Of a stretch of DNA of 64,000 bases, positions 6,860-58,969 are shown piece by piece; the first letter of the stretch is position 1, and the number at the start of each line of letters is the position of its first letter. Source of the stretch: Guillardia theta CCMP2712 (taxonomy: Eukaryota; Protista; Cryptophyta); NCBI RefSeq assembly GCF_000315625.1, contig NW_005434594.1, forward strand, positions 304,482-368,481. Direction: 5' to 3'. Both the position numbers and the translations under genes were made by a program. The notes beneath the pieces are model-generated. The model saw only the letters and a program-made list of their open reading frames with translations. It searched no databases and was not told the DNA's origin.

Positions 6860-8450
6860 CAAGGGGGTTGAGAAGTGGAGGGAAGGGGGGTGGGGTTGTC
6901 CAAGGCGGGGGTACTCCAGAACTATCATTGTACCCCCTTCTTCTACTGTAAAAAGTGGGTAGGGGTAAGGGGACGGATCTGGCTGTACCCCAATTTATTA
7001 ACCTGCGCCGGTACACCCACCCCCATTCTCTTGTGCGTTTCTACCCCCACCCCCGCTAACCTCATGACATCGCAATACGACCCTGCCCCCCCCTACCCCC
7101 ATCCCAGTGGTAAAAATCTGCGATAGGACTTATTGAGCGTCTGTAGCACCACCCACCCCCTTGCCTCTTCTGGGGTGTTAGGGGGTAACGATGAGACTCT
7201 TGGGGGAACCAACCGTTGCAAGATATCTTAAAATATTATTTTAAAATAGGTAGATGCTGCGAGATAGAACTGAGATCCAGGCGAGATCTGCAGTGGTTCG
7301 GAGGTCCGTCAACTGCAGTCGTCGTAGAGGGCGAACAGACCCTTCGGTCCTCCTGTAGACCAGGGGGTGGTATGGCTGGGCGGGGGACAACGACGGGTAG
7401 TCACGATTGGGTTCCTGGTAATTTGGCTGTCACGAACTTGAATCTTTTCGAAGCAGTTTTAAGTTTTAAAGTCGGGGGCAAAGGTCATGGCGCTGTCCAT
7501 AGGTCCCAGTTAAATGACACCAAAAACTATGTTTTCGTTTCATGCCCTTGCGTGGGGTCAAGGAGGGACCATGGGTCTTTTGAATTAGTGATCCACATAC
7601 AGAAATGGATGGGGATGGGGGGAGGGGACACCTGCGCCTATCGCACTATTGCCGCGCACAGCTGATACCTGGCAAGCTGCTGACCGTCACGGCTTCAGGG
7701 ATAAAACTCAAGAGCTCGGAATTTTAAAGCCTAGAGAGCCATGCGCACCACTAGGTAAAAAAAAAAGTGACGTGCGGTCAAAGTGCGGGGCCCCTTCAAC
7801 GGTACGGTCGGTCAAGTTTTGAGTAAACAGTCCGAGTCAGTCCGATCACGCCCTTGCGGCCCGAGCCGGCCCGGCCGCCGCGCCGCCGCCGCCGGCCCGG
7901 GCCGGGCCCGTCCGCTGAGTCACTGTGGCACGTCACGCGCCGCCGTACTAGCCTTGGAGACTTCTCAAGTTTTTTCAAAGTCAAGTTAAAAATCAGTATG
8001 AGGACAAGTATGATGGGACTGATTCTTGAAGTTCAACGGGCCGCCAGGCCCTGAGCCTCGGAGGCCGGGCCAGTGAGGCCGCCCGGCCCGCCCTGTCAAA
8101 CTGAAGTTACTCATGATACTGAGCCAGTGAGTCAGGCCGCAGTCACCGTGCCACCGTGCGGCCCGGCGCCACTGACCGTCACGGGGCGGCACCCCGGCGA
8201 CTCGGCCGCCCGGCGCCCGCCGGCCCGGGCGGAGTCATCCGGCGGCTGATTGTCAGGCGGCCGCACTCAGTGTAGTGTCGGAGGCCCTGAGGCCCCGGGC
8301 CCAGCGGTAGTCTTTCGCGGCCCCAGCCTGGCAGTGCTCCTGGGCCCACAGTGCGGCGGCGGCCGCCTCCTCAGTCTCAGTACTAGCGGCTCTCTAGGCG
8401 GCCGCGCGGCCGGGCGGCGGGGTGACCCGGGCCCGGGCCCAGAAATGCGC
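6860..8450. promoter_or_regulatory. Intergenic module: TACCCC/GGGGTA-rich block (6860-7650) + palindromic GC-rich block (7780-8450) between divergent bZIP and UTP23
   Basis: No credible ORF; dense ACCCC/GGGGT words followed by CCGG/GGCC/GTCA words; the same architecture recurs through the window. Confidence 0.5.
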
Positions 8451-8736
8451 ACGTGAAAATTGAGGGAGGGAAGGAGGACGGGGGGGGAGGCAGGAGAGGC
8501 AGGAGAGGCAGAACCAAGGAGGAGTGAAGGGACGAAGCGGTTGAGGGAAAATCAGGATGATTGAGGAGAGAGGAGAAACGAGAGGGGTGAGGAAGGGGAC
8601 TTCACACAGCGGACGAGGAGAGAGGGCGGAGTTGAAGCAGGGATCTTGGTTGCTATGGATAGAAAGAGTGACCTTGCCGCACTTGTAGAGGGTTTGACAG
8701 GGGCGGCAGGTAGATCAAGAGGAAACCAGAGACAAG

Positions 8737-14255: not shown

Positions 14256-14612
14256 GGTCGTCAGGCGGGACGATGATGCGACCTCGCTCGGCTCTCCCGC
14301 ACACGCCTCTGCGCAAGGTAGACCTTGCTGTCGGACCCGGACAGCGCGGGAGGAGCTGACGAGCACTGAAGAGCAGCGAGGATCGGAGGCATGCTGAGGG
14401 TGACAGGAGTGCTGGACCTCCCGACCTCTTGAGTCTGCAACCAAGTGTGCGATCCAAGAGATGATGGGCAGAATGTCGTTCTGATACATGTCGGGCAGGA
14501 TGGTTCGGTAGCCCAGGGAGGGCAGCTGACTTGTGAAAGCGAAGAGTAGAAGCTGAAGATATCTCCTCTCGTGCGCAGCCGGAGGTTCTTCACGCCCTTG
14601 GCCTTGAGGTCT
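14256..14612 (-). pseudogene. Inverted, internally deleted partial copy of the adjacent GH5-like gene
   Basis: Reverse complement matches ~15321-15391, 15434-15498, 16114-16293 and 16327-16339 in order, with a frameshift and large deletions. Confidence 0.9.
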
Positions 14613-17498: not shown

Positions 17499-17564
17499 GG
17501 AGGCCGCAACCAATAGAAAGCGACTTGTTGTCTGCATAGCTGTCACCCTATGCAAGTTTCGGAT

Positions 17565-18155
17565 GCAAGGGGTAGTACCCTACCATGATTGTGTAGCTTC
17601 CATCCTTCATATTTCAGTGGGTCAGGGTATACACCCCTACCCCATTATACAAGCAGAAAGAAAGGACCACCCCATCTGACTCGCGGATGAGTTTGTCAGC
17701 GACATATGACCGGTGGTCTTCACATAAACCAGAACGTGACCAACCCCCAACCTCATAACTAATAATCATTGAATAAAATTCAAGTACCCGGCTCCTTGAG
17801 TGCCAGGATCGCGTCGGGCCCACTCAGGGCGGCTCCGACGGACGGTGTCACTGGCCGCCGCCGCCTCAGTCCCCCCGGTAGGTGACCGTTACAAGTGAAC
17901 CCTCCGACTCATCATGGCATCCTGCCCACTCAGCGCCTGACCCCCCACTGAAACTAAAGTGACGGTACGGGTCCGGTGTCGACCCCCCGGGCCCGGGGTG
18001 ACTTGACTCAGCCAGTCCGGCGGCACGGGCCCCGGAGTCCCGGACCAAGCGAGCCCGGCCCCGGGGGGCGCCCGGCGAACCGTTGAACTCCGGCCGCCGC
18101 CGAACGCCAGCGCTGAGCATTTAGTTATCCAAGATAAGTCAGTACGAGGACCAAC
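17565..18155. promoter_or_regulatory. TACCC block + GC-palindrome block between divergent rps21 and acyltransferase genes
   Basis: Same word content as 6860-8450; ends with TCAGTACGAGGAC (18139-18151). Confidence 0.5.
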
Positions 18156-18429
18156 TAGTTAGCAGTTGATGCCTCCCCCGATCTGTTTGCTTGCTGGCGA
18201 GGCGAGCTCGGATGTAAGGAGCCGCTTGCTACGGGCACGAAAGGCGGTAGGCTCGGAGCTGCCGGGAGGAGAAGCCGAACGGTGAGAAGAAGAGGCAGCG
18301 GGAGAGGAAGAGGAAGAGGAAGAGAAACAGGAAGAGACTAACTGACGAAGACGACGAGGAGGAGGAGCTGTCGCTGTAGTAAAAGGCGTAGTGTGACTCC
18401 GGAAAGACTCTCCGGAGCACTGGGAGGAG

Positions 18430-20366: not shown

Positions 20367-21631
20367 TCACCTCTTGCTCACCGTCACACGCTCCCCGGCC
20401 GCCAGCATGAAAGTCAGATCCGGCAGCATCCCAAGAGCAGAGTTGAAGTCCCCAGCTCCCAGCGCCTGCGCGATGCTCGTCCGTAGAGCCTTGTGACGTG
20501 ATGCCGGCGACTCCTTGACGGACTGCCAGACCGTCAGCTGGCGAGTGGAAGCGAGAGGAGAAGGAGAAGGCACGAGAGGAGAAGGAGGAGGCACGAGAGG
20601 AGGAGAAAGGGGGAGGAGAGGAGTAGGAGGGCAGTTGGCGAGAGAGAGGCAGAAGGTTACAGTTGTCGGCGTTCCTCTCAGTTTCAACTCAGCAGTCACA
20701 TCTCGCGCCACCTCCCTCCTCCCTGCCAAGTTGACCTGAGAAACAGAAGCTCTCGCATCCCCACCAGCTGTCACCTCCTCCTCCTCCTCCTCCTTCTCCT
20801 GCTGCTGCTGCTGCTGTTGCTGTTGCTGCTGTCAGCGCTGCTGGACTTCTCTGCTGGACTTTCTCGACTGCCCTCCCGGGCTCGCCCATGCTGACCCTCC
20901 CTAAGTTTGTCCCCCTCGCTGCCTTGCCGGGGCTTCGACTGCCGCTGGTCCTGCTGCTGAGCTCTTGCCTGCCCGGGTGGGGGCCTGTGGGGGCGCAGGG
21001 TCAAGAGAGGGAGCAGTGAGGAGGAGAGATGGGAGAGAGAAGCAGGAGAGGTAGGAGGAAGGAAGGGGAGGGGTAAAGGGATGAGGATGGGGAGAGGGGC
21101 GGAGTGAGGGGAGAAGGGCAAGAAACGCCAGGAAGAGATCAGCGGAGAGAAGGGAGGGAGATAAGGAAGGTTGCATACTGTCATGGAAGAAAGGGAGGAG
21201 GGAAGCAGAAGCGGAAGCAGGTTGGAGAACGGGAGGAGGAGGGAGAGGAAGGAAGAGGAAGAAGAGAGGAGGGAGAGAGAAGGGAGATGGAACCGATGTA
21301 GTTGGAAAGGAGCCGCTTGTTCTCAGTAGACGTCTGGCAGTTGAAGACGACGAGGAGGAGTTGGCTTAGGTCCCACTGCGAGGAGTCAGCCCACTGCTCT
21401 CGAGCACAGGCGATGTTGTGTGCTGGTTGAGGACCGCGCTCAGCAAGACCCCAGCAGCAGCCCACCTCTTCCCCACCTGTGACACGGTCCTTACAGAGCT
21501 TCTGCCACAGCTCGAGGAGAGAGCCCTCAAGCATGTGCGGCGGAGGGTGGAGCGCAAAGAGTTTGCTCCCGTCCTCAGTGATCTCGCTCTGTGCGGAGAG
21601 AGTGTCAGGTGGAGGGAGGAGGGAGGAGGAA

Positions 21632-21714
<83 letters not shown>

Positions 21715-25175: not shown

Positions 25176-25194
25176 TTCATCTTCTCAGTTTCAG

Positions 25195-26300
25195 TCCACC
25201 CGGTCGTCCAAGGCCGATCGGGCCGGGCCCGGAGACCGGCCCGGTCGAGTTGACACCCGGTCCAGCACTGAAATTCTTTTTACTCAACTCACTTCCGCTT
25301 TGTCTCTTCTTGACCCTCTCCCTGTTTATACGGACGCCGAACAATCACCCACCCCTTCGACATGTCCGCACGTAATTTTTCATTATCACCCCCATTTACA
25401 CTCAATAATTACCGGAAATAGCAAGGTGGGTCACTACCCCTACCCTACATGATAAGTTCTACCCCATTCCATTCTGTACATGACAACTGTAAATAAAGGG
25501 TCGTTGCAACCCATCTACCCACCCCTAGTGTTGTGCTTTCAGGATGGTACAAGAGAACCGGTACATTTATCTGTGACACAACCTACATTTTGATGGTAGG
25601 GTGGTTGTTGACAAGGGTACATTTCATAGAGAAAGGGGTGGTATTAGGAACTAGGGGTAGTTAGGTCCATCGATTTCAATTGAAATGGTGGGGTACTCAC
25701 TTGGGAAATTTGGATGGTGGGGTAGGGTAAGTAGGGGTAATTTTATCCCAAAAAAAAATTGCGGGCTGTATGAGGTTGTAAAAAGAGTTTCTTTGTGGGA
25801 ATTTTTTGAAAATATCATTCCAAGATTTTGAAATTTGAAAATCAAACCTGAAATCTGTACCCTTCGATCTTCCCCCCCTACCCCACTCAATTGTACCCTC
25901 TGTAATAGCTGAGCGGACCCCCGATCGGCGTCCCTGGGTGGAGACATAGGGTAGGGTGGTATTTTGATGTGGGTGGGTACCGATAGCAGAAGGTAGGCCC
26001 AAGAGGTCCTAGAGAATACGCCTCCTGGTGAGGAAGGGAGGTGGGGGGTACTCTAGACTTAAAACACGGGTAGTCATGCTGAGGAAAAGGGGGTAAGGTT
26101 AATGAATTTGGGGGTCCGGCCGACGAGGCTGTAGAGGGGTGGGGGTAGGGCTATGCGAAGATTCCAACAAAGGAGGGGTGGTGCACACTACCCCATAATT
26201 CTGAAAACACCCCTATTCATTCCTATGACTACCCCCTCAATTCAGGCCACCCTTTACCACAAGTATTACCCCCACCCCCATCAAGCACAGACCTCCTGCC
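25195..26300. promoter_or_regulatory. Short GC block + long TACCC/GGGTA block upstream of the aftiphilin-like gene
   Basis: Word content as in other modules; TTTACTCAA at 25279-25287. Confidence 0.5.
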
Positions 26301-27339
26301 CCGGCAGCCCCCGCAATGCAGGAAGGGCTTTGGTAGAGCGAGAGGAGAAGCACGAGGAGGATGAGCACATCACAGCTGCAGGGGATCATTATCTTGCGAA
26401 ATTTCTCATGCAAAGTACAGAGAGGATTGAATGAGAGGACAGAGCAGAAAGTAGATCAGCAAACAGGAGGCAGCAAAGAGACTAAGGGCAGTGGGACACC
26501 TATGAAGGCGTAAGGGGAGGGTGAAAGTATAAGAGGAAAGGTGGATGAGGAGCAATGCGCAATCAAAAGATCTCAAACTTGTTCGATAAAAAATCGAACG
26601 GTCAGGACGAAAAGAAAGCTCTTGCGCTTAGATAGACGCTGGAATGCCTTGGGATGCCTCTAGGTGTGATTGAGGGGTAAGAGCTCGTTCGACTTTAGAT
26701 TGTGTTCACAGCAGAAGCTTTCTTGTTATTCATCCTGCCTCATTCATACGCGATTTCATGTTGAGATGAGTTTAGAAGAAGTCATCAGACACGTGGCCAT
26801 CCCACAGGAAGATGAAAACATCCAGAGGCAGGAATGGCAGAAGATAGATACTTTGTTATCAAGACCAAGAGAGTAGTTGTGAGTATGCTGCTGGTAACAT
26901 GCATATTTCTGCAGACAGCATCTGTGTGATGAGCACCTGTGTGATGAGATGAATGATAGAGGCATAGCACACAGATGCATATATGAGGTGTCTAAGCTGC
27001 ATGCTAGTGATTTACCGACGGAGCAATATTGTCCACACAAAACTGTGAGGCTAGAAATCATGTGACACGCTTGCCCCAACCTTGGAACCTGTTGAGGTTT
27101 TGAATGATGCTTGGTGTCGTTCTGATATTTTGCAGCAGATCTCTACTCTTAAGGCTCCCCCGCCAATATTAGCCACCCAACCATTTAGTATCCCAACTTA
27201 GACAGATCACGATGCCCAACCCCAGGATATGCCTTCTGGTTGCGCTTATTGCGGTTCGATCTCTACCGTTTTCGCCATGAGTTTCTCATGTCGATTTCAG
27301 ACTATGGTCGCGAACACAAGCACCATGAGAGTCCTTTGG

Positions 27340-30099: not shown

Positions 30100-34104
<4,005 letters not shown>

Positions 34105-34432: not shown

Positions 34433-34500
<68 letters not shown>

Positions 34501-34879: not shown

Positions 34880-35560
34880 TTGCACATGCGGGATCAGCGC
34901 ATGCCGGGGATGAGGGGGGACGAGGGTCTGGGATTACTCGGATCCCCGAGTCCCGGAGTCCCGCCGCACTCGGAGGCTCGGAGTCCCGAGGCCCGAGTCC
35001 GGTAAGGTCAGGGCTCAGTATAATCGCATGCCGGACCCGGCGCCGTGAACAGTGCGGCCGGGCTCCCGGCGGGCCAATCAACTTGCCACTGATGATGACG
35101 TACTCCAGTGCGGCCGCCGGGACTCGGGACCGTCAGTCACTGTCAGGCGGAGTCTCGGATCCGACCCGGTACGCTGGCTGCCGGCCCGCCGGTTCACTGA
35201 CTGGCACTGCGGCAAGCCCTCAGGCGGTGACGGAGTGACCGTACGACTGTCGGAACTTCGACTCGGCGTCCGGCGGGCCCGCCCCACCGCCGTGTGATCG
35301 GACTCAGTAGGCTCCGCTCGGAAGCACTGCCAGTGAGTGACTTGCCAGTATGCATGGCAGCGACAAAGAACTTCGGAAGTTCAACTTGACATGATTTCAC
35401 TGATCAAAAACTGAGAAAGAGTAGCCGCTTTAACTCATTTTCAATCTGTCACTGGCCGGAGGCCGAAGTACAACTTGCCTGCGTCAGTCTAGAAAGTTCA
35501 GTGAATGCCGGGACCGTTGGGGAGAAAGTTATGGGCCAGGCCGCCCGGCGTAGGCTAGGC
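34880..35560. promoter_or_regulatory. GC-palindrome block upstream of DNAJC21
   Basis: CCGG/GAGTC/GTCA words; GAACTTCGGAAGTTC near-palindrome at ~35368. Confidence 0.45.
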
Positions 35561-37078: not shown

Positions 37079-38123
37079 GGCCTGGGATCTCAGCAAGGGA
37101 CAACGCACCCTTCACCACACGGTCAGATATAAACCACAGCGTCTTGATGTGACTTCAGCTGCTGCTTCTGCTGCTGCTGTGTTGTTCGGTTCGCATCACT
37201 GGCATCGAGCCCATGTCGGTCTACCCACGAAGACCTCTTACCACGTCTTCGGATCGCTCTCCATCCCTCACCGCAGACACAAATTCGGCCATGACCATCA
37301 TCGCAGTTGTTGCAATCCTCCTCCATGCTGGCTATGCAGCAGTTTTCCTACCACCTGAAGGCCATGCTCTTCGCGCGACACAAAATCTCTCCGGGAAGCC
37401 ACCGGTCTCAACCCTCCAGGAGTGAAGCAGAGTCTCCTTCACCTCCCGCACATGACAGTTCTTCCTCTCCTGCTCTCTTTCTCTCTCACACACATCCTCC
37501 TCCTCCTCCTCCTCTCCTCCTCCGCTCCCGCCTTTCCCATTCGCCTCCACTACGCGTTCCTCTTCGCATTCTTCTTTCCTTTGACTATAGCATTTTCAAC
37601 CTGTAACACCCAAATTTGCTAGGGAGCCATGAAATTACAAAAAGACTTCCAGAACATTCTATCTCTTTTAGCTAGAATTTTTCTAAATTTCTGTCCTGAT
37701 GACAAAAATTATTGACTATAGATAGTACGGCACCGGACGGCGCCGGGCCCGGCCCGGCCGGGAGTCCGGGCCTCGCTACTTACACAGACTGTCATCACCC
37801 CCTTTCGTTCACGTATTTACACCGGTACTTCACCACATGGGGTACCCACCCCTCGTTCTGACTCTTGTACCCCCACATTTTAGTATTCGCACCCACCCTA
37901 CCCTAACCTACCCTGGTACCTAAAGGCACGTGGGGGGCCGGCCTCCTCTACCCCCTACCCCCACCCCCTCAAATTGTACCCCACCCTCGACAGACACTTG
38001 TGGATTTTACAATACCCCTGAAAGATCATGATAAAGTACCGGTCATTCCATGAAATGGGAGTAGAGCATGGGGTGCATAGAAAACGGAGATGGGGTGGTG
38101 GGGTACCAAACTAGGAGTCGGCG

Positions 38124-40848: not shown

Positions 40849-42309
40849 TTAGCCCTCCATGTCTTGAGACAAGTACATCTTCACCTGGTTGTCTCCCCAG
40901 TCATCAAAATTGTCCAGATCGTTGAAGGCAATCGTTGTGTCCATGATCTCATGGCAGATCAGGCTTTCTAAGATCGCATTCTCGGCTTCCACATGAGGGT
41001 TGCTCGAACCCTTCATGGGCGTGAAGGCCCTGGTCCTCATCCTGTCACCAGAGCTGATCGATGTACACAGATGTAGAACAGCATCGTCCGCAGGAATTCT
41101 AGTCGGAGTCTTGAGACGGTCAGGTGTGACTGATGGATACCCTTCCAATGTTGAGCCGTCCCCACACAAGAAGAAATGTTGAGGCGAGTGCAACATAGGT
41201 GACTTGATGCTGATCGGCCTGCTAGGTGAAGTCTGAGGGGTGAGAAGCTGCATGGGGATGCTGCCATCATCTCGATGCTCCGAAAGATCATCTTCAATGT
41301 TCCTCTCCTTCTTCACTTCGCATTCATTCAGTCCTTTGTCAATTGATGCACCTGCGCCTTCCTCAGACTTGACAGTCACTGTTTCTGATTTGACACGCGG
41401 CCAGCTCACTGCGTTGGCTTTGCATGGGATCGAGTTCACCATGTTCAAGTTGGAGACACCAAGGTCCAAGAACAAAGGTTTCGATTCAGGGATTCCGCTT
41501 CCAATCGAGGAGTCACAGAATGTAAGGATCTTGGCAGTATCTGGGGACCATGGACCACCGTCTTTGCATTCAAAATCAAGTCTCTTGCGAGTGACCTTCT
41601 TGAAGTTAGATTTTCTCCTTTTCTTGGGCTCACTCCCATCTTGGATAGTTGTATAATCTGAACAAGAGCTTCGTGGATGAACTTCTGAAAACATCACAAG
41701 TGGTCCCCCGAAGCCTGGATTGTATTTGGGCACTGGCTTGCTGGGAAGCATCACATTCCTTGCTGATCCAGGTACTGCAGAGACCATCTCCGGCTGCTTT
41801 GGGATTGAATAGCTAGGATGATGCATTGGACGCTCCATCCTTGGCGGCATTTCAAGACTCTGGTGGCTCAGGATTGGAACGTTCGGGGCCATGTCCGATT
41901 CGTTGTGATACTTTCTCTTACGGATAACCGACTTTCCATTCTTGACATGAATGCGCAGATAATGCATCTTACTGTGATACAGGCGATTGTTGAAGTAGGA
42001 GCATCTTTCGCAATGGTACCAACGTTTTGTCCCATCGTGCATCGTGAGGAGTCCAGGGTGCTCACTGCGCACCCACTCGCTCTCGTTCTTCCCCATCGGA
42101 GGACATCTTCGCTTCATATCTGCCATACTCGAGTGTGCATGCTCTTCATCTTTCTGTCCTTGATAGCATTCCAGGGAAGGCTTAGTGGGAGTCATGTCGC
42201 AACTCGACGTTCTTCGGCCGGGCTTGGACTGACGGAAGGTATCAACCACGCCAACGACTTTCTTGCCGGGAACGTTGGACTTGCTGCTTGCACTTGAGGG
42301 TCTTGCCAT
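40849..42309 (-). CDS. Single C2H2 zinc-finger protein (putative transcription factor); intronless, 486 aa
   Basis: WYHCERCSYFNNRLYHSKMHYLRIH; NLS-like PKKRRK; acidic C-terminus. Confidence 0.8.
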   Translation of the reverse strand: MARPSSASSKSNVPGKKVVGVVDTFRQSKPGRRTSSCDMTPTKPSLECYQGQKDEEHAHSSMADMKRRCPPMGKNESEWVRSEHPGLLTMHDGTKRWYHCERCSYFNNRLYHSKMHYLRIHVKNGKSVIRKRKYHNESDMAPNVPILSHQSLEMPPRMERPMHHPSYSIPKQPEMVSAVPGSARNVMLPSKPVPKYNPGFGGPLVMFSEVHPRSSCSDYTTIQDGSEPKKRRKSNFKKVTRKRLDFECKDGGPWSPDTAKILTFCDSSIGSGIPESKPLFLDLGVSNLNMVNSIPCKANAVSWPRVKSETVTVKSEEGAGASIDKGLNECEVKKERNIEDDLSEHRDDGSIPMQLLTPQTSPSRPISIKSPMLHSPQHFFLCGDGSTLEGYPSVTPDRLKTPTRIPADDAVLHLCTSISSGDRMRTRAFTPMKGSSNPHVEAENAILESLICHEIMDTTIAFNDLDNFDDWGDNQVKMYLSQDMEG

Positions 42310-42679
42310 TTTCGATCTGTTTCTGGAGGTTGCTTGTCAAGGGGATGTGCCTGAGAGCGGAGAACAGCCCTGACAAGCGACACAATCACCCGATCCCCCC
42401 TGCTCGATTCACGTGCGGGATCAGCGAGAGTGGCGAAGAGGGGAATAGAACGGAAGGGCAGCAGGAGATCACGGATGCAAGACCGGATCGGAGGAGTGCA
42501 GGAGGAGGAAGGGCGGGAGGAGGAAGGGCGGGAGGAGACGGGGGAGGAGGAGGGTGCGAGAGCGGCTGGGGGGAAGCAGGGAGCAGGCGGGGGAGGAGCG
42601 GGGGGAGGGGCAGAAGAAGATTTTTTCCCGCCAAAAGAGGAGCGGCGGGTTAACTAATCTGGCACTTTCCTTTGTTGGA

Positions 42680-44180
42680 TGCCCACACCCCTACCCCCCA
42701 TTTTACCCAAAAATTACCCACCTTTTGTACCCTGTTCCTCCAATCGAGAGTACCCTACCTGTGACACCGTTGCATGAGACCCCACCCCCCTATGAGAGGA
42801 ATTTCATCGGAGACTGACTAGGTACAAGTCAGTACCCCGACCTAGTCGATTTTACTTTAGATGTTACTACCCCACCCGCCTAACAGGACGGATGTTAATT
42901 AACGGATACCACCTACCCCCTCGCAGCACATTTTTCGCCCACCGATCTCCGGTCTACACCCCTATGGCGATGGACCCCCAGGTCACATTGAACCCCACCC
43001 CCCTTTTCCCATCACCTCCCATACATTTGATGGGCAACTTGCACCTACCCCTACCCTCCCAATTACACAAAATGAACACATTTGAAGACTACCCCTCGTC
43101 CGTCCACAATTATACCTACCCCACCCTTTTATATCAACCTGACCCCTGTAGAAACAACCCCTACGGTATGGGATTGCCATTTCTGTACCCGGTATGACCG
43201 TTTCTCAATGACCACCCCCACCCTAAAAACCGTGCTCCACAAAGAAAGAAAGGACCCCGTCACTTTACTACCCCACCCATTATTGACCAACGGTTACGAC
43301 TGCGGCGGAAGGTACCTGTGACCCCTTTTAAAAGTCCCTGACGTTTTTTCACCCGTCCTTTGAACAGTGTTCTACCCCTACTTATTCCCAACCTTGCTGC
43401 AATGAAGACTCATAGCACCGGTAGTGATCTCATGCGAGCGGTCACAATGGGACCCTACCCCCTTAATTATTCCCCAAAGTGACTCAGTCTGACCGGACCC
43501 AGGCAATATACGAGAGTTGCCAACAGCCTGAAACTTGCAACAGGTAGGAGCCACCCGTCCATTCTACCGCAAGGAATTGAATCTTGGGGGTAGTGGGGTC
43601 ACGGGATCGATCCGGCTGAGGACCGAACCGTGACTGACTCACAGTCAGCGGCCGGAGGTCGGGCCGGCCGAACTCCGAACCGTCACGGCCCAGCCGGGCG
43701 GCGGCCGCAGTCCGACGGACTCGGGCCCCGGCGGTCAGTCACCCGTCCGAGCACGCCGCCGCCGGGGCCCTTGAACGTGATCGGACCGTGCCCGGCGAGT
43801 CCGAGTCACCGTCACGGGCGCCCGGGGGCTCGGCTTTGGACTCGCCGGACCGCCGGACTCCCGGACTCAGACCGTACTACGGTACCGTGCCCGCCGTCGC
43901 TGGGTCACTGTCACTCGACTCTGATCGAACGTGAACTGAGTCAGCCCCGGCGGGTGTGACAGGGCCCGCTGCCCGGCGCGGCCCGGGCCCTCCCACAGTA
44001 CGGTCCGACGACTCGGATGCGGGCCGCAGTGCGGCCGCAGGGCAGCCCCGGGCGGCGGCTGCCAGACTCGTGACTCCAGGCTCTGACCGAGTCGGTCGCC
44101 GCCCGGCCGGATCATCGGAGCAGCGGCGGCCACCGCCGCGTCGCTGAGGCTGACTCTGTGACACGGTACCCACTGCGTAC
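42680..44180. promoter_or_regulatory. TACCC block (42680-43600) + GC-palindrome block (43600-44180) upstream of the C2H2 gene
   Basis: One of the clearest copies of the recurrent module. Confidence 0.5.
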
Positions 44181-44235
44181 GAATATGAGGCAAGTTCAGT
44201 GCCACGGTGCTGCTGTGTGGAGTGCCGCCGGGTCA

Positions 44236-45459
44236 TCATGATTTCTTCACTATTCGAATCTTGGATCCGTTCTTCACTCCTGCAGCGCCAATTTCAGAGT
44301 CCAGGTCCAGAACCTGTCAGGGTTGTACGGAAGGTCAGAAGGAAGCGAGCCGATGGTGTGAAGAATGCGTCTGGCATACCTTCCCCTTTCTCTCCGCCTG
44401 GTAGCTGCCGATGTCGTCCACTCCTACCTCGTTGCACCAGGCCTTGACCAGCAGTTTACATTTTTGCGTCGGCTTCACCGTTACTTCCAAGCTCGTGTCG
44501 TCTCCTCCGTAAATCACAAGATCCCATTTGTCTCTCTCCGAGTATTCGACCTCGTCTGAGTCCATGATTTCTTCTACAGCACCAGAGATCGTGCTCACAG
44601 CCTTCATCGTTACTTCTTCTCCAAAAAGCCCCCTTCCCGATCTAAGGTTGCCCAGCACACTCCCGAACAGCTTCCCCGTGCTCGATGCATTCACGACTTG
44701 TGAGACGGCTCCGGCGACAGAGTCAGCCTCCTGCTTCCACTCCGCAGCTCGCTGCCCTGCTTTCTTGGACAACTCGGCGCTGGAGATGGCATCCTTCACC
44801 ACGCGCGCATTCTTCCCTGCTTGAGCTGCTATCATCACGGGATCCATTACAGGGACGCTGAACCTATCGTCAGCCTGGTAGCGCCTCTTCCCTTTCACCA
44901 CGTCGACGTCAATCGGAACTCGATCGGGGTACGCTGCTGTCACGACGTCGGCTGGGGCTTCACAAAACTCGTAGACCTCTGGAATTCCAAAGGCATCCTC
45001 GATTGCGATGATCTTCTTGATGTAACTCTGGAAAGGACCTGGGTTCGCTTCCTCCCCGAAGATGTAGGGCTCAGGAGGGAGCGGGTCCATCTTGCTGCCA
45101 AACCTAGGTCTGACATACGAGTCTAGCTCCGAGAAGTCCTTCCACGTTCTTTGGAATAGCCATGTCCTCGGCTTCTCCCTTTCATCGTTCATGTATTCTC
45201 CTGCGAAGAAGAATGTTCCACCCATGTTTCTCTTCAGCGTCACCGAGACTCTGCCTTCAAGCATCATCATTCGGCGGAGCAACGACGTCTTCTGCTTTCT
45301 CTGTGACAGGCTAGGATAGTTCCCCATCCTCTGACCGGTGATGTAGCTTCCCTCGTTGAGCTTAAGTCCCCGCATCGGAGCCTCCACTGCATGGAACGCG
45401 AAGGCTGCAGGAATCGCAGCCATGCTCAGCGTGCCAAGCAGCACAGCCTGCATGGCCAT
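44236..45459 (-). CDS. Plastid-targeted protein with PX-like domain and C-terminal ubiquitin/SUMO-like domain; 2 exons (intron 44314-44379)
   Basis: Signal MAMQAVLLGTLSMAAIPAAFA-FH + basic transit peptide; WLFQRTWKDFSELDSYVRPRFGSKMDPLPP..FQSYIKKII..EVYEFCE; WDLVIYGGDDTSLEVTVKPTQKCKLLVKAWC..GK/VLDLDSEIGAAGVKNGSKIRIV. Confidence 0.7.
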
Positions 45460-45589
45460 CTCCCGATCTGCCCCTTCCCCGCTCAACCCCACCTAATTCG
45501 TGAGTTTCTGTTGTCGAGAAAACAAATAGAGTCCAACATGGATTCTATAAACCAGCAACGATTTTCCCTTGGCTCCAAAATAGCTTCTG

Positions 45590-46560
45590 ATCGGCCGCCG
45601 GCCGCCGCCCGGCCCGGCCGGACCCGGCGTCTCGGGGCCCGGGGCCGGTCGCCGGGGCGGCGAGTCCGTCCGAGGCTCGGACGCCGGTACTACGGTACTA
45701 CCGTAACACGGCCCGTGACTCCGGCCCCGCCAGGCTGCCACCGCTACTAGGACGGCGTGACTGCCGCGGCCCGCTCCGAGTCCCCGCCGGCCGGGCTCAG
45801 GCTCGCGGGGACGGCGGGCGGCCGGGCCCGTGAGACGGTCACTGCCCGGCCGGGCCCGCCCGCCGGGCCGCACCGTTAGCCTCGCTGCGTCACGAGTCAA
45901 CTTTGCTCAAAGCCAAGTTGAGCTGAGGCCGGTCGGAGCCGGGCTTGGCAGCCCCGGTGACCCGGTCAGCCGGGCCCGGCTGGCACTGGACGACTGAGTC
46001 GGCCCGCCGCGCGGCCGCGGTTGACTACTAGTGACTGATTTTTAACTTAACTTTGAGTAAACGTAACTACCACTGTCGCACAAAATCACGCCAGCCTCAG
46101 AGGCGGGGCTGCAGAGCGCCGCCTCAGGGAAATGATGGGATGTTGGTTTCGAGGTTCATTTTTGAAGTTTCAAATTGTGTCATTAATATTCCTTATTTCA
46201 GAGATTATTTCAAAAGTTCGTTTCAAATAATTCCTTCTCTCACTCCAGCAACGGAGGGGTGGAAGGGTCCATGACCCCTACCCTACCACCTTGTCGGTAG
46301 AACTCGATGCGAAATCGAGGGTAGGGGTGAACGTGGAAGCGGAAATAGGACCCAGGAGTGAAGGCATGTACAATAGTGGGTGGTCTAGCATTGGAAAATA
46401 TCGGGTAGGGGTTATCACCCCACCATGGATATTCGAGGATAATTTCATAATAATGAGGGGTTAATCATGGGTTTTGAATTCTATTGTAGGGTGGGGTATT
46501 TGATCAATGTTATCGAGGGGGGTAGGGTATTGTCGGAAATAGAGCAGAGGGTATAGAAGC
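45590..46560. promoter_or_regulatory. GC-palindrome block + conserved AT motif + TACCC block between divergent genes
   Basis: Contains ACTGATTTTTAACTTAACTTTGAGTAAA (46034-46061). Confidence 0.5.
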
Positions 46561-46806
46561 AGCGTCGGTGGAAGGGATCGGTATCAAGGTGATACGATAT
46601 GGCATGGCGTGATATGCAAACCGGCTGCCGCGATGTTGAGCTTTCTTCCCCTCCCTATGCACAATCAAAGCCGTGCGATTCTCTCTCGATGCTCCCTTTC
46701 TTTGAATACCGCGTCTTGATGTAACAGAGCAATTCAGCCCATTCTGATGATGTTTGTTTAGTGTTGGATAAGTTGAAAGTAGTAGTTTACTGATGATGTT
46801 TGGCAG

Positions 46807-46992
46807 ATGTTCCAGACCCTCTACGGCCAGACCGCTGCTGCCCTCTACGCCAAGGCCGCCGGCCAGAACGCCCAGGCCCGCCAGCTCTACAACGCCTCCG
46901 CTGACACCTACTACAAGGCCAACGATGCTGCTGCCTACGACGACTGGGTCCGCGCCCGCAACCACTGGGACTACTTCTACAACCGCTCGTAA
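46807..46992 (+). CDS. 61-aa Ala/Tyr/Asn-rich small protein, copy 1
   Basis: Extreme C-ending codon bias; identical protein encoded at 54423-54608; ATG directly after a CAG acceptor. Confidence 0.9.
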   Translation: MFQTLYGQTAAALYAKAAGQNAQARQLYNASADTYYKANDAAAYDDWVRARNHWDYFYNRS

Positions 46993-47120
46993 ATCCTAGA
47001 TTTCAACATCAATAAAATGAGAAAAACTTAATTTGCGTGCTGATACAACTTGTTATCATTGGATGGATGTTGTTGGAGTGGTTGCAATGTCACTCTTTTC
47101 ATATCTACAGCAATGTTTAA

Positions 47121-48425
47121 TCAGAATGTTTCATCTAGCATTACATCATTGTTCCGCAAATCTTCTTCCATCTGCATCCTGAAAATTCACAGTTAATATA
47201 TGGTTGATATCCTGCATTCAACACGTACTCGATTAGTTCAAGCATGGATTCGAACTCCAACCATGAGACAACACCGTCTCCGTCTGAGTCTAACGAGTTG
47301 AAGATGTAGTCAAACTGTGAGATGAAAATCAGCTTGTGCAACCAGCTCTATCACTCCTCACTCACCCTCTCATCGGAAACGCTCCCTCCCAAGGATCGCA
47401 GCGCGCTCTTCAACTCGTGGCCGTCGAGGTATCCTGACTTGTCGATGTCGAACTTGCTGAACAACTCTTGCCAACTGGTGTATCCTGCAGTCACTGGAAG
47501 TCCCGCCAGAATATCCTTCAATGCCTGCAGGCAGAGTCAAGATGCTGTGGAAGAATTCTAGGTGATGGATATGAGTTGCACTTTTCTTGAAGACATTCAG
47601 AGGTTGGATCCCAAAAATTTCTCTGTTTTTCATCGACAACATCAATAGCATGGATGACAAAGATGTGAAAGGATGACATCCGAAACCATAGCAATATCAA
47701 TCCCCATCCCATGTCTCAGGAGACCAATCACACTGAATCTACATCTCTGCCAACCAACCAATCGTAAACTGGTTGCCGATCTAGACAACGGACAATGAAA
47801 AGCATCTTTGGCACAATCTTGATATCAGGTCAAGAAGTATTAAGTTACGTCAATTCAACATACATGATGTCAAGACACAAGTCATTCCTTCAACTTGCTT
47901 TCACTGAAGAATGTATGTCGATGAACACTCAAAGAATGCATGTTCCCTCGCTGTCAAGTCACAGACACATTGAGCAGCCAGAACAAACATGTGCATCATA
48001 ACATCGCAATGGGAAAGACAAAAGAGCATTTCAATACGAGCGCAAGAAACAGACAGATCGCAGCTGCCCCAGCATTTACTGCATCGTGCGTTCTTGCACC
48101 TCGCAAATATTGCTTCACTCACCATTAAACCCGCGTTCGATCGGCTGGCATCCGACGTGAAATGTGCCATCGTCAACTTTGTCGATGGCATCGCTTTCCG
48201 CAAAGGAGGCAGTCTTCCTGTCAAGGCTCTGCCAGCAACTGCGAGGTTGCAACGGGTCGAGCAAGATAGTTGGGATGCAGCGCGGGAGAGAGAGGAGAAG
48301 GATGGGTCGAGGGAGGAGGAGCGAAGGATAGGAGAAGAGGGGAGAACATGGAATGCGTTAGCGATCCAGCATGAAGACGCCGCCATCGCAGCCGCCAGGA
48401 TTATTTTCTGGCCGTATCGCTGCAT
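47121..48425 (-). CDS. Plastid-targeted EF-hand protein, multi-exon
   Basis: Leader MQRYGQKIILAAAMAASSCWIANA-FH + Ser/Arg-rich transit peptide; C-terminal ELFSKFDIDKSGYLDGHELKSALRSLG / FNSLDSDGDGVVSWLEF. Middle exons are unresolved. Confidence 0.75.
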
Positions 48426-48734
48426 TGTTGCAACACTCCGCTTACTTTACGATCCTCTTGAATTTAGGGGGTAGGGTAGTACCACCTACCCTTTCAATTG
48501 ATCCCATATTTTGTGCTTCAAAGGGGTGGAGAGAAAACTGTAACCATTACCCTACCCCCCTTTAGGGATGTCAACAAAATTCAGAATAAGGGTGGGGTAG
48601 TATTCATCACCCTGCTGTTCTAGTACTCTTTAATCGATAATATGGAGGTAGGGTAGTACCACCCACCTGGGATGAAAGATGTGTTTCTCAAAGCATCGAA
48701 GTTTGTGCGACACATAAAGAGTTCGGAAGACAAG

Positions 48735-48900
48735 AGGGAGCGAGGGGATGGAGGGAGCGAGGGAGGGAGGGAGCGAGGGAGGGAGCGAGGGAGGGAGCGA
48801 GGGAGGGAGCGAGGGAGGGAGCGAGGGAGGGAGCGAGGGAGGGAGCGAGGGAGCGAGGGAGCGAGGGAGGGAGCGAGCGAGGGAGCGAGCGAGCGAGGGA
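48735..48900 (+). repeat. (GAGCGAGGGAGG)n-type purine-rich repeat
   Basis: Directly visible. Confidence 0.9.
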
Positions 48901-49294
48901 GAAAGATGAGTGGTAATGAGGAGGGGAAGGAAGCGACGAAGAGAGGACAGAGGGAGGAGGGAGGGAGGATGACATGGAGTAGAGGGAGGAGAGACTGAGG
49001 GAAGTGGAAGGAGAGGGGAGCTGGAATGCAACAGGCTGAACATGAGTGGAAAAATGAAAGCAGAGAAACTTGAGGAACCTGAGGAGGCAGCAGACTGACT
49101 GAGGCAGGGAGGGAGGGAGGGAGTGAGTGAGTGAGTGAGGGAGGGAGGGTTAGTCCTATCGCCCTAGTATCATGATACCACCTGAACATCGTCGTTGAAG
49201 TAGTTTGTAGAATCACAGCGTTCTCCTCACGGAATGTCAACGGGTTCCTCGCCCTGTCTTACTGTTCTCCTCGCAGGCAGCCACACCCGTCGAG

Positions 49295-52230: not shown

Positions 52231-52404
52231 TCATAGCTCTTTCGTGTTTATCAGCCTTTCCCCAATCTGTCTCTCCTGTCCTCTCTCCTCTTCCTCACTC
52301 TCCCTAAGTTCAGGCTTGCCGGCCTTCTCCTCCCCTCGTCTCCCCCAGTTCCTCCTCGTACTTTACTCCCTCCTCCTCGTCCTCGTCCTCCTCCTCCTCC
52401 TCCT

Positions 52405-52440
<36 letters not shown>

Positions 52441-53295
52441 CTCGTCCTCCTCGTCCTCCTCGTCCTCCTCGTCCTCCTCGTCCTCCTCGTCCTCCTCGTC
52501 CTCCTCGTCCTCGTCCTCGTCTTCGTCTTCTGCTCTCCCCTCCTCTCCACTGTCCTCTTCATTCCGGCGCCTCAACCATTCTGGTACCAAAGAGTGAACG
52601 ATCACGAAATACCCCTACCCCCCCACGGCCCTTATAAGAGGCACGATAAGAAGGGTACTTGAAGTATATCCACCCCCCATGTCAAATACATTCCCGTGGG
52701 GGTACTGTAATCTATTGAAAGGAGGGGTACTTCATAGTACTTGAAAGGGGTAGCTAGAATTCAAAGGGGGGTGGTGCCGGCACGAAAAAAGAAGTCAAAT
52801 GTACAACTTCTTATCAAATGGTTTGTAGTTTGTATGCTTGCTGAAGGTGCGAAAGGTAGAAGAATGAGAGGGAGAGAGAGGAAGATGAAAGGAGGGAGAA
52901 GGAGAAGGAGAGGGAGAGGGAGAGGGAGAGTTCAGGGCAGGGAACCAGGGCGAGGGGGAGAGGGAGGAAGAGAAGGAGGGTGGGAGAAACAGAAAACAGG
53001 GATAGGGACAAAGGGAGAAAGCGTGAAAGAGGGAGAGTAAGAGAAATTTGAATGAGCACACAAAAGTATTACTCGAGGGAGTGACGAAAATGAGGTAAAG
53101 AGGCAGGCAACACGACTGGGAGGACAAGAGGGAGGGATGGGTAGGGAGGAAGTGAGTGATTAATAGTGAGTGAAGAGGCTTTAGAGCTGTGCGACGTGGT
53201 TATGAAGTTATTGGAGTCAGTTGGTGTCACACCCCGAAGCTTTACGGGTTGCAGACGTCTACAGTGAATGCTCAACCTCCGCTGGATCACACATA

Positions 53296-54422: not shown

Positions 54423-54608
54423 TTACGAGCGGTTGTAGAAGTAGTCCCAGTGGTTGCGGGCGCGGACCCAGTCATCGTAGGCAGCAGCATCGTTGGCCTT
54501 GTAGTAGGTGTCAGCGGAGGCGTTGTAGAGCTGGCGGGCCTGGGCGTTCTGGCCGGCGGCCTTGGCGTAGAGGGCAGCAGCGGTCTGGCCGTAGAGAGTC
54601 TGGAACAT
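54423..54608 (-). CDS. 61-aa Ala/Tyr/Asn-rich small protein, copy 2
   Basis: Same protein as 46807-46992; probable 5'UTR intron 54609-54832 (GTGAG..CTAG) and a TATA-like TATAAG near 54870. Confidence 0.9.
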   Translation of the reverse strand: MFQTLYGQTAAALYAKAAGQNAQARQLYNASADTYYKANDAAAYDDWVRARNHWDYFYNRS

Positions 54609-54899: not shown

Positions 54900-56340
54900 A
54901 TTTAGACCACCCACCCTAATCGAGCTCCGTTCACAATTGTCCTCAAATGTACCCCTGTATTTCATAGTAGATCGATGGGTGAAAGACGATTTCTGATACA
55001 CACCGGTGATACAACCACCCCCTGTTGTGTGACCTGAGCGGTACTGTCGTGAGACCAGTAAGCACATACGGTAAGGTGGGTGGTGGTAAAATCCCAGGAG
55101 GGGTCATGGCTGTTTGAGGGGAAAGCTAGGGGTGTCAAGCTACCTACTGTTGAGTAAAGAAGGTTGGATGAGTCGGAGCCGCCCGGCACGGGCCCGGATG
55201 TCCGATTTGCCGCAGTTGCGGCCGGAACTGAGAATCGTCCAGGCCGGCCCGGCGCCCGGCCGCGGGCACTCACAGCTTCTGAGACGTCGATCAGAGTAGC
55301 CTAGTGCCGCACATCAGTGTGGCAGAAAGAAGGAGCGAAACTCAGAGCTGGCAGTGGGTCGGCCCGGGGCCCGGGACCCGGGCCGGGCCGCCCGGGCCGG
55401 CGTATGCGAGCCAAGCCCGCAGCATCATGAATCATCGGAGTCCGGGCCGGTGATCCGATCATCGGATCATCCGATGATGATCTCTCCCGGCCCAATGATA
55501 CTGGGCCGTCACGGCGCCGCGTGGCATACTATGGCATAGCCTAGCCTACGGTCACCGATCCCGGCACCGACCATCGGACCGGGCCAGCGGCCGCGCCGCG
55601 CCTGAGTGTCCGGGCCCCCAGCCACTGCAGCCTGGCCGGACCGGCGAACGGTCGACCCCGTCACTCAGAACTTCGGAAACGACCGTACTATACGAGCCCC
55701 CGGCCCTGTGTCAGCTCTCAGAGTCTCGCTTCTCCGAGTCTGCCGCAGTGCGGGCCGCTGCCACCGCGCACATGATCAGTCTTGACCCAGACAGCCAGGG
55801 CCTTGCGCCCGAGGCCGCAGTGCGGCTCAGTGCCGGCCGCGCCGGCCCGGGCCCTCACTGGCAGGGGCGGCCGCGAACTTCCGAAGCCTTGAAGGAAGCC
55901 CGGCTGCCGGCGGGGCCCGGGCCCGGCGGGGCCATAGCGTTGTCGGGTCAAGGAACTTGCTGACAATTGGGATTTGTACCATCTTCACTCAAAGTTAAGT
56001 TAAAAATCAGTACGAGGACAATAATGAACCAGATCCAGGCGTTTTCCAGTACAAAATTGTGTGTGAGTAAAAAATCCAAGGATTGGAAGGTTGGAAAATC
56101 CATTTCCAGCGCTGCAAGTTCAACGGCAACCGGGGGTAATTGAGAGCTTAGATAAGTAAACAGTTGTTCCTATTGCCTTTGCATAGGATCACTTAGGGCC
56201 TTGTATAGTGGAGTAATGATTTGTACCAGAACCTGATGGGTAGGCGTGGTAATATTTCAAATGATTCGAACCCAACGGACGCGACAGGGGGGTGGGGGGT
56301 ACAGGTCTTGGTCTGGTACTGTAATGGGTACCTTTTAAAA
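54900..56340. promoter_or_regulatory. TACCC block / GC-palindrome block (55170-55950) / conserved AT motif / TACCC block
   Basis: TTGAGTAAA at 55150; CAAAGTTAAGTTAAAAATCAGTACGAGGACA at 55990-56020. Confidence 0.5.
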
Positions 56341-58969
56341 TACATTTAGCAGAGGTGTCTCCCTCCCCATCTCCCTGCCCTCCACACTTGCGCATCCCTA
56401 TCCTTCCCTGTCCATGAGTCTCAGACTCTCGTCAGACCTTCCCTGATGACCCTCAACTTTCTTTGACGCCTCTGTCTGCCTTGTCCTTCCTCAACTTGCT
56501 GGAAATTCAAACTCTGAAACCATGCCCATGAGTTGACAAGCACTGAGTTTCTCAGTTTGAATGCGGGAGGAAAGATGATTCATGGAATGAAACCCAGGTG
56601 TGCATATATCAAGCTGATGGATACGAGTCGTATAGCACTGGCAAATGACTGTCATTTTACTTCTCAATGATACAGCATCAAGAACTTGCTCTCGATCCAT
56701 CAGTACTTGCAAAGGGTCATTTTTCAGACAGAACTTCGAGTTCATCTTTATTTTGCGTCGATCCACACGATGACATCTGGTTGATACACTATGTTTCATG
56801 AATAGTAAGAAAGAAAGGCTGAACTGTGCACCGCTTGATTGAATTTTCTACAATACTCTTCAATTGTGTAAGAGAGCATGTCACATGTAATCATACCAGG
56901 CAAACAAGTCACAGTATCGCTCCAAACCGCGTTGTGCTTGAAACTGAGACTCTACATGAAGATGTTATCGGACTAGTCGAATGATGTACAACTTTATGGT
57001 GATACGTGGTTTAGAACTGTTGCAAAGCGGAAATGGGAATATGTAGCGGCCTAGGTGATGTTTTCAACGTACTTCAATAAAACAAAGCCAAGTTGTTGCT
57101 AACAACATCATCATTTCTCCATGAGCCTGCATGACCTGATGTACATGTTAGAGAAGTCGATGCTCGTTCATCAAAAGAGTGGTTAGACAAGAAATTGGTA
57201 GATACTTCTGCGCAGCATTCTTGTGTATGTGGAATCGTGCACACTCACCGTCGTGTGGAAGTGTTTGCACATTCTTCTGCGCAAGTCTCATACCTTGTCC
57301 TTATCATCTGGAATGGTTGACTTTCGCTGCAAGTAATATGAGCAGCGCAAAGTTGGCAAACTTATCCATATGGTTGGAATGCCGGCGATGTATTGCAGCC
57401 TGCATAGCACCTGAGCGCTTTGTTCCACTTATCGCTTGGTTCCAAACAATTGATGATATCGCAGCATGCAACTCGCGTTGGCCCAAGGATGTCAAGCGAG
57501 GAAAAGATCAGAATGATGGAAGGGCAAGAATGCAGCGAATAAGAGAAGCTGGTCAGGCTCAGTTTACTTTGTGTAAGAAAATGCCAATGCTTTGTACATG
57601 TTAGGTTACAAAGAAAGAGGCAAGAAAGCTCTGGTATGAGAAGAAAGATTTATTCAAAAGGGTATGTCCATTTTCGTCTGCATGATTCAATCGGATCCAA
57701 CATCAATCAACTGCTCCTGATACCATGTCAGTCTAGTCAAAACAAAGATATCAGCACCTTGAAAATTTCTTGCTTCGACTCGAGGTGAAGGAAATGAAAT
57801 ATGTTTTACAATTCTATAAGGGGTATCGTTTTGTCGCTCAAAAGCGTCTTGATTGTAAGTCATCAAATGGAACACGACATGCAATCAATTTGCAAGTCAT
57901 GCCTTCATGTGGTACCTCATCACTGCCATTTGATGAATGCACTGGTATTCCTTGAAACTCTTTACATGCCTTGGCAATACTCTTGCATATTGCTCAGACC
58001 GCCCTCAAGCCCGACTCTTTGCAGCAGATTCCTATAAAATAAGTACAGATCATGCTTGCTTCATGACTTCCTACTTATTGCTCATGAGAGTCAATGTCAT
58101 CCATCGTACAGCGCCACTAGCGGACGGTCCGTGCGGAGTACTCCTTATTCAAGCTGCTAAACTTGAATCTATGATGATCAACCCTCTTTACATGTGTTTG
58201 CAATCACAGAGATGTTTTCAGACTGCTGCGCTCACACCCGGCCCAGATTCTGCAGGGATTGCCTCTGCTTGTCCTCGTCTGAGCTCTCCTGATGCAGATG
58301 AGTCACGTCTGCGTAACATTCACTTGCTAACCTTGGATATGCAACCAGGGAAGGGAAGGGGCAAGGCTTGAGAGCTCCCTCTGATCTACAAGGGTGGTCT
58401 ATGTTGGTCGGAGGCAGGGTAGGGTCCAAAACTTGACCCCATCGGAGAAGGCACTTTCACTGGGAAACAGGTGGGTCCAAAGCATCATAGTTTGAACAGG
58501 GGAGGTACCGCATCAACTATTTTGGTACAAGTTTTCCTAACAGTACTCGAATATGTACCATAAAATTGGTACTGTTGGTACAATTATTTGCTACCAGGAA
58601 GTACCCTACCCCCTTAAACAGGTCCCAACCAATTTGAATCAGCTCCCAGCCGTCTGACCCACTCCAGACCCCAACTGCCATTTGCTATTCACATATGTGG
58701 AAGGATACCCCCACAGAAAACTATTGGAAACCAGAGGGGTCAGTTGAGAGCGACAACGCTATGGCCGCTTCAAGTGTTGAACCGGGCCCGGGGAGTGCCG
58801 CACTGCGCAAACGGAAGTTTCTGCAAGAACTACTCCCACCCCTCAGGGCCTCTGGAAACAGTGACAAAGACTGAGATCGGACGTGACAGGGGTTCAGTCA
58901 GGCTTTTACCGTACGGCTGAGGGCCTCCCGAGTCCAGTTTTTATTGTTATTTTTCAAACTTTACTCACA

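Follow-up and report, generated by a model that had tools for sequence, protein, structure and literature searches.

Two classes of sequence islands on the promoter side of nuclear genes in Guillardia theta

The locus and its intergenic islands

The window analysed here is a stretch of 64,000 nt from Guillardia theta CCMP2712 (scaffold JH993044.1, GCA_000315625.1; window coordinates equal record coordinates minus 304481), in which eleven intergenic tracts carry clusters of short words of two kinds, referred to below as A and B blocks. An earlier note, made from the sequence alone, had proposed these tracts as a recurrent bipartite module marking the 5' ends of genes, and our analysis found them tied to gene 5' sides in six independent loci as well. 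The host scaffold is nuclear, 408 kb in length and carries genes with spliceosomal introns, and the single-exon heme oxygenase open reading frame (ORF) and the condensation-domain ORF of the window match gene products of JH993044.1. NCBI gene calls were in hand for window positions 8770-30176 and 36805-64000, and a Pfam match confirmed a bZIP ORF at 5532-6596 on the minus strand. The window contains assembly gaps at 23746-23919, inside a gene called at 21323-24753 and between diverged repeat copies, and at 34669-34768 (100 N), with CT-rich low-complexity DNA on both sides; neither gap was spanned by any statistic given below.

A and B segments were called by an unsupervised word-density threshold, with A defined by TACCC/GGGTA-type words and B by CCGG/GGCC. 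The threshold yielded nine A and eight B segments, and all 17 fell within the eleven tracts with none elsewhere in the 64 kb, which bears out the tracts as real and localised. Word counts per 250-bp bin formed sharply localised clusters: CTACCCC/GGGGTAG occurred 30 times in 3.7 kb of A compared to 3 times in the remaining 57 kb, and CGGCCCG/CGGGCCG occurred 28 times in B and was absent from the rest of the window. In a cross-validated test against circularity, CCACCCC was 17-fold enriched in zones defined by TACCC alone. B blocks had a GC content of 0.62-0.71 and a CpG observed/expected (o/e) ratio of 0.8-1.07 (~1.0), in comparison to 0.545 and 0.70 for the window.

Nine of the eleven tracts lie in gaps flanked by two gene calls and each of these faces at least one gene start, the gaps concerned being divergent in six cases and tandem in two. 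Tract 1 is flanked by the bZIP ORF and by a gene call running off the locus end, and tract 4 (34880-35560) lies in a stretch without gene calls (30177-36804), ~130 nt to the right of the 100-N gap. The claim that every tract lies upstream of a gene or between divergent genes therefore stands for nine tracts and does not extend to tract 4, while the reported emptiness of convergent junctions agrees with the six convergent gaps with gene calls in the window, none of which holds an island. The recurrence every 8-12 kb ascribed to the large tracts merely follows the spacing of 5'-facing gaps, as islands in the other loci recur every 2-6 kb.

From left to right, the first tract begins with an A block (6883..7230) that adjoins the bZIP gene (minus strand) at its 5' end, followed by a palindrome-rich B block of GC ~0.7 (7799..8450) interrupted by a copy of a conserved dispersed element with the core CAAAGTYAAGTTAAAAATCAGT (7973..8007, plus strand). 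The A block at 17506..17760 adjoins the start of the S21 gene (minus) and precedes a B block (17790..18130), after which comes a partial copy of the element at 18137-18153 (+). A short B block (25190..25270), preceded by a (CTCCT)39 tract at 24981-25176, is followed by a large A block (25330..26305) with alternating strand runs (C8 G8 C3 G11 C6, or C6 G8 / C3 G7 C6 with a stricter word), and tract 4 consists of a B block with no A partner (34900..35340). A short B block (37720..37780) and an A block (37773..38110) separate the RRM gene (minus) from a gene on the plus strand.

The A block at 42670..43480 is minus-oriented, has all 26 of its words on one strand (26 C-strand and 0 G-strand words on the plus strand) and so carries its G-words on the sense strand of the minus-strand gene 40766-42309. 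Distal to it is a B block (43592..44180) situated ~56 nt from the stop of the minus-strand gene 44236-45459, and another B block (45585..46037), bordered by a 28-nt, high-copy copy of the conserved element (46034..46061, minus strand), lies upstream of the same gene, ~120 nt from the end of its RNA contig. The A block at 46240..46560 (+) carries G-words on the sense strand and stops ~50 nt short of where the RNA contigs begin for a gene that encodes a 61-amino-acid (aa) protein. Further to the right are two tracts with A blocks only, at 48401..48671, where the EF-hand and heme oxygenase genes diverge, and at 52579..52823 in a tandem (minus-minus) gap, nearer the gene start. The largest B block (55168..55960) has weak A words on both sides (54912-55129 and 56130-56310) and a full copy of the conserved element at its right edge (55987..56021, plus strand), and a weak A block (58533..58677) lies ~700 nt upstream of a 1067-aa gene.

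Purine- or pyrimidine-rich simple-repeat tracts, such as (CTCCT)39 and (GAGGGAGC)21, often occur between island and gene start as a third recurrent component of the spacers (24981-25176, 34769-34852, 42490-42608, 48734-48901, 52350-52527 and 8450-8600), and their strand relative to the gene varies. Among the genes of the window, the GH5 cellulase gene shows an inverted partial duplication (14266-14612 versus 16296-15320, 97% and 85% identical) upstream of an intact copy.

Position relative to genes and transcripts

Six independent 20-kb loci from other scaffolds, all with gene calls, were retrieved through the 61-aa protein and scored with unchanged thresholds. Islands occurred in 11 of 11 divergent, 11 of 15 tandem and none of 11 convergent gaps (Fisher p = 1.6e-6), island sequence occupied 0 of 6,855 convergent bp, and two long convergent gaps of 2,879 and 1,146 nt were also empty. 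This supports the view of the tracts as a promoter-side architecture at the level of the lineage. The sole genic B call was a coding 9-mer repeat, (CACCGGCAT)x19, at 18225-18393 of locus L006, and it was the only B false positive in 184 kb.

Within the tandem gaps of these loci, islands lay 49-965 nt (median 375) from the downstream coding sequence (CDS) start and anywhere from 12 to 4,895 nt from the stop of the upstream gene. Where both blocks were present they usually abutted, and A was nearest the gene start in all seven tandem gaps that hold both. At the level of gaps, co-occurrence was about that expected by chance (both 8, A only 7, B only 7, neither 4). A and B are separate modules and not an obligatory pair.

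A distribution of this kind might also arise if the islands were neutral by-products, of slippage-like duplication affecting a C-rich word in A and of foldback and tandem micro-insertions in B, with no sequence-specific function and with a 5' bias that exists since 3' gaps are short and constrained. The mostly short convergent gaps (<900 nt), the chance co-occurrence of A and B and the 5' gaps that lack islands would agree with this explanation, whereas the emptiness of the two long convergent gaps and the proximal position of A in seven of seven tandem gaps would not be expected from it. Further evidence on this alternative is considered with the B blocks and the paralogs below.

Comparisons with reads and contigs were confined to window positions 42000-47999, a single 6-kb locus. 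An independent DNA contig from a 2021 run spans 42000-45885 with 1 difference and at the baseline depth of 58.6, which indicates that the A and B blocks it covers are correctly assembled and single-copy. Assembled RNA contigs cover the genes: they stop at 42464, extend over 44236-45465, which includes a 66-nt intron, and resume at 46606; RNA contig depth was zero over A (42600-43599 and 46200-46599) and over B (43600-44199 and 45600-45799). A and B blocks are absent from mature RNA, and the 5' ends of the contigs, which represent mature RNA at this one locus, lie 50-220 nt outside the block edges.

Absence of repeat families and RNA genes

Searches by blastn of the tracts against the window gave no alignment except for the shared element of ~28-39 nt, and no pair among the 17 blocks aligned. 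An all-against-all blastn of the window returned only coding microsatellites and one short element, and revealed neither paired terminal repeats nor long inverted arms that align. Tandem Repeats Finder (TRF), applied to the window and the six loci, found no tandem arrays in A and only micro-duplications of 2-4 copies in B. No RNA genes were found in the window by Rfam at gathering thresholds or by ARAGORN, and the window also lacks the spliced-leader sequence of G. theta (PMC5619915).

The short element is present in copies at 7973-8007 (+), 55987-56021 (+) and 46034-46061 (-) and in part at 18137-18153 (+), with a shared core of ~28-35 nt. These copies sit at the edges of B blocks with unrelated flanks, and their orientation relative to B is not constant. 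The 200-bp bin containing 46034-46061 reached a summed contig word depth of 28,267, compared to the baseline of 58.6, with contigs diverging on both sides; depth this extreme implies very many dispersed genome copies, and a rough estimate places the copy number on the order of a thousand. Only one weak copy was found in the six other loci. The element matches no Rfam family, and its sequence differs from that of the G. theta spliced leader, so that an identity as spliced leader was rejected. Two metagenome scans for it gave no match in one case and, in the other, one chance match in a low-GC, apparently unrelated contig.

Several B blocks have at their edge a conserved high-copy element of ~28-35 nt, which could suggest that the islands descend from a transposon or satellite that favoured insertion sites upstream of genes and has since decayed, and a true tandem (TATAGGG)n array in an environmental relative (described with the paralogs below) might be read in the same manner. 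We consider this origin very improbable, as none of the 17 blocks aligns with another, the upstream regions of nine paralogous genes are equally unalignable, DNA depth over A and B is that of single-copy sequence, tandem arrays are lacking in A and restricted to micro-duplications in B, paired terminal repeats or long inverted arms were not detected by blastn, and each copy of the conserved element stands alone between flanks that are unrelated. The earlier view that the tracts were not spread by transposition is in agreement with these results, which speak against satellite arrays as well, and no end-to-end alignment to a transposon or satellite was found within the window by blastn and TRF. 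Since the blocks are unalignable and the architecture nevertheless persists, it appears to be renewed in place.

A blocks: oriented arrays of a single word

The alignment of 392 ACCC-anchored sites gave C-Y-A-C-C-C-C as the A motif, with little information beyond the core. Distances between successive sites peaked at 4-6 nt, giving doublets such as ACCCCACCC and ACCCTACCC, and spacing was otherwise broad and irregular in arrays of 10-26 sites over 0.2-1 kb. Neighbouring sites had the same orientation in 188 of 232 cases, in comparison to 161 +/- 4.9 in permutations, which demonstrates strand runs. According to our own reading of the gap maps, in about four fifths of A runs the G-form falls on the sense strand of a gene whose start the run faces. 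The folding energy of A as single-strand DNA was unremarkable (z = -0.5). G-quadruplex motifs (G3+N1-7) were not enriched in either class (0.94 per kb in A and 0.74 in B versus 0.63 overall), and a G-quadruplex-rich origin element of the OGRE type was rejected for this reason.

Homotypic factor-binding clusters, one of the possibilities raised by the earlier note, fit A well, since its arrays use a single specific word, are organised in strand runs and hold a fixed position. The most probable role of A is that of an array of oriented sites for factor binding, a function that we infer from position only, and each array would then be a homotypic cluster recognised, in a set orientation, by a single sequence-specific factor. 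This putative factor may mark or open the promoter, as sites of general regulatory factors (Reb1, Rap1 and telobox type) do elsewhere.

Known clusters of such sites include Rap1 doublets in ribosomal-protein promoters, the Reb1 word TTACCCG of yeast and the plant telobox AAACCCTA, and from what is generally known of these systems A resembles them in being a repeated short C-rich word, often in doublets, with a preferred orientation and a location that is immediately upstream of the RNA start and some hundreds of nt from the ATG. A differs from them in its word (CYACCCC), in the far greater size of its arrays (10-26 sites over 0.2-1 kb) and in its occurrence before most of the sampled genes instead of one class.

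B blocks: palindromes and templated insertions

The B blocks are characterised by an excess of odd palindromes, in which two arms flank a single central base. With arms of at least 4 nt these numbered 102, compared to 31.6 +/- 5.5 in dinucleotide-preserving shuffles, and with arms of at least 6 nt there were 22 compared to 3.0; the central base was C or G in 94 of the 102. Even palindromes were enriched about two-fold in B, and no palindrome excess was detected in A blocks or coding controls. When inverted-repeat spacers of 0-12 were scanned, the window gave a peak at spacer 1 (43 versus 8.8), which recurred in the six other loci (84 versus 19.9, z = 16). Roughly one third of B bases fall within such palindromes, and the arms comprise dozens of different sequences. 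Arms of arbitrary sequence argue against a protein-binding code and in favour of a copying process. As a candidate for a specific B code, the AP-1/GCN4-type word TGASTCA was rejected, being 8-fold enriched while many other B words are 5-30-fold enriched. Large-scale hairpin or cruciform formation was also rejected as a general property of the blocks, given inconsistent folding z-scores.

Freshwater metagenome run X14 holds a relative that is 1.9-3.6% diverged from the window in coding DNA, and a close relative of the marine G. theta seems to be present in that freshwater sample. Four indels distinguish the islands of the relative from those of the reference. Two of these are insertions in the relative consisting of tandem copies of an adjacent 6-mer; a third insertion reproduces, in perfect reverse complement, an 8-mer situated 24 nt upstream (a single event, at a depth of ~3); and the fourth indel removes 4 nt and thereby disrupts a palindrome. 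The B block at 43592..44180 shows short tandem and inverted duplications in the relative. From 46044 to 46407, which covers the linker and the first half of A, 6 of 364 positions differ (1.6%), compared to ~10% in the flanking non-coding DNA at 46518-46833; at this one locus, the low divergence hints at constraint. Local duplication as the source of the island indels, together with a symmetry in B that is independent of arm sequence, is in line with the neutral explanation, whereas the difference between 1.6% and ~10% divergence speaks against it.

Templated inverted duplications of 5-34 bp, attributed to foldback priming with Pol delta and end joining, have been described at double-strand breaks in yeast (PMC11724301), and the indel pattern of the relative, as far as these sequences allow it to be judged, matches them. 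B resembles these events, and also short-range template switching (PMC7954356), in consisting of inverted copies, from a few nt up to some tens of nt in length, of adjacent sequence, with one 8-nt inverted-copy event separating the reference from its close relative; it differs in that the events appear to concentrate in, and to build up into, entire promoter-side islands across the genome. B was most likely built by templated foldback insertions, and it has probably been continually remodelled by short templated insertions that are inverted (through foldback or template switch) or tandem. The B pattern would then be the record of a local mutation process and not a binding code.

Recombination hotspots and replication origins adjoin promoters in yeasts, plants and animals. 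If the islands were such sites, B could be the product of GC-biased conversion and break repair, and A a targeting or G-rich origin element. The composition of B (~70% GC and a CpG o/e of ~1.0, in comparison to 0.545 and 0.70 in the window) would be accounted for, as would templated inverted insertions, a known scar of break repair (PMC11724301). G-quadruplex motifs are nevertheless not enriched in A or B, and the strand polarity of A relative to genes is left unexplained, and we regard this alternative as unlikely.

B also resembles CpG islands of the vertebrate type, as a discrete GC-rich segment of 0.2-0.8 kb with undepleted CpG on the promoter side. It differs from them in lying outside the transcribed region, in its single-base-pivot palindromes and in a background that is only mildly CpG-depleted (0.70). 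B exceeds the customary thresholds for a CpG island (GC >50-55%, o/e >0.6, at least 200 bp), which discriminate poorly here because the o/e of the window is already 0.70, and no overlap with a transcription start or first exon was seen, there being no RNA contig depth over B at the one locus, in mature RNA of a trans-spliced species. The label of CpG island, which had been offered for these tracts, is therefore a weak one. Yeast mitochondrial GC clusters and the palindromic repeats of green-algal organelles (PMC4478555, PMC4524435) are likewise GC-rich, palindromic, hairpin-capable and intergenic. These organellar sequences are alignable mobile families, in contrast to the G. theta blocks, which are nuclear, single-copy and unalignable with arbitrary arms; membership in such a family was rejected, as the tracts lie on a nuclear 408-kb scaffold and the blocks do not align.

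Nine paralogs of the 61-aa gene

The 61-aa gene occurs at many sites, and nine G. theta copies with coding DNA 96-99% identical were compared, located at 46807-46992 (+) and 54423-54608 (-) in the window and in loci L004, L006, L007, L008 (two copies), L010 and L011. Its expression is very high, with a read depth of ~64,000 compared to <10 for neighbouring genes, and its DNA depth is ~30-fold. The protein has no convincing Pfam match, and an identical 61-aa protein is indexed in 943 blocks of a public collection.

When the upstream 900 nt of the nine paralogs were compared by blastn, no alignment was obtained apart from one 40-nt match. The layout was nonetheless common to all nine, starting with ~250-420 nt that contain no words, after which come sense-strand G-words and, in most cases, B. 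The nearest sense-strand G-word lay at -255 to -422 in eight of the nine, and within -700 the nine paralogs together had 45 G-words and 12 C-words. Of all the evidence presented, the comparison of these paralogs makes the best case for position and orientation, and not sequence, being what is retained.

These features also bear on the neutral explanation, for which the use of one specific A word with a sense bias of 45 to 12 across nine paralogs, and the narrow proximal edge of A in promoters that cannot be aligned, are difficult to accommodate. In its favour, two environmental contigs that encode the identical 61-aa protein (94% DNA identity) lack the architecture, one of them having an ordinary GC-rich upstream region with no such blocks. 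On balance we consider neutral by-products a possible but doubtful explanation. The second environmental contig (L013, 1737-1962) holds a true tandem array, (TATAGGG)n, with a unit similar to the A word, and this array may hint at the origin of such words or may be unrelated.

Interpretation

In summary, the reading that we prefer, and to which we assign an even chance, is that the tracts are untranscribed spacer DNA upstream of transcription starts and comprise two independent sequence classes, with A consisting of oriented sites and B being built by mutation. A would lie directly upstream of the gene start it faces, mostly with the G-rich form on the sense strand, and B would usually lie beyond A, toward the neighbouring gene.

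It is important to note that several observations weigh against this reading. Around 20% of A runs are directed at the 3' end of a neighbour, with no annotated gene start ahead of them. At the thresholds used, islands are missing from 4 of the 26 gaps in the other loci that face a gene 5' end and from 2 of 10 such gaps in the window, and in tandem gaps the islands show no more than a tendency to be anchored on the 5' side (d5 < d3 in 8 of 13; Wilcoxon p = 0.08). As most convergent gaps are short, their emptiness may in part reflect a lack of room. The RNA evidence consists of assembled contigs from one 6-kb locus, and at least one fifth of G. theta genes are trans-spliced (PMC5619915), so that true starts could lie further upstream than mature RNA shows. 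For B, the single-strand folding energy is inconsistent (z = -1.2 and -5.1), and the contigs of the relative are metagenomic with a depth of 3-6, the direction of its indels being unpolarised.

A more far-reaching form of the preferred reading, which we put forward tentatively and as doubtful, is that most promoters of this organism are organised by a lineage-specific, self-renewing system in which oriented CYACCCC arrays would attract a general factor that determines the start and direction of transcription, and the GC islands next to them would be continually rebuilt by insertions from a promoter-targeted break-and-foldback process. If this were true, regulatory DNA would be the same in form without shared sequence between genes, between paralogs and probably between species.

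Significance

In the literature surveyed, which covered promoter motifs, intergenic palindromes and nuclear telomere repeats of G. theta, no account of these islands came to light, and the architecture looks like an undescribed, lineage-specific type of promoter region. Cryptophyte promoters are essentially uncharacterised, and a promoter-side grammar of this kind would signal gene 5' ends and the direction of transcription for annotation and would provide candidate promoter parts for cryptophyte transformation. The CYACCCC arrays provide a concrete bait for a general regulatory factor. B blocks may be a natural record of short templated inverted insertions building up at particular sites of a genome, events which have so far been studied mainly at induced yeast breaks and in cancer genomes, and the nine paralog promoters offer a clean system in which an architecture is maintained without conservation of sequence.

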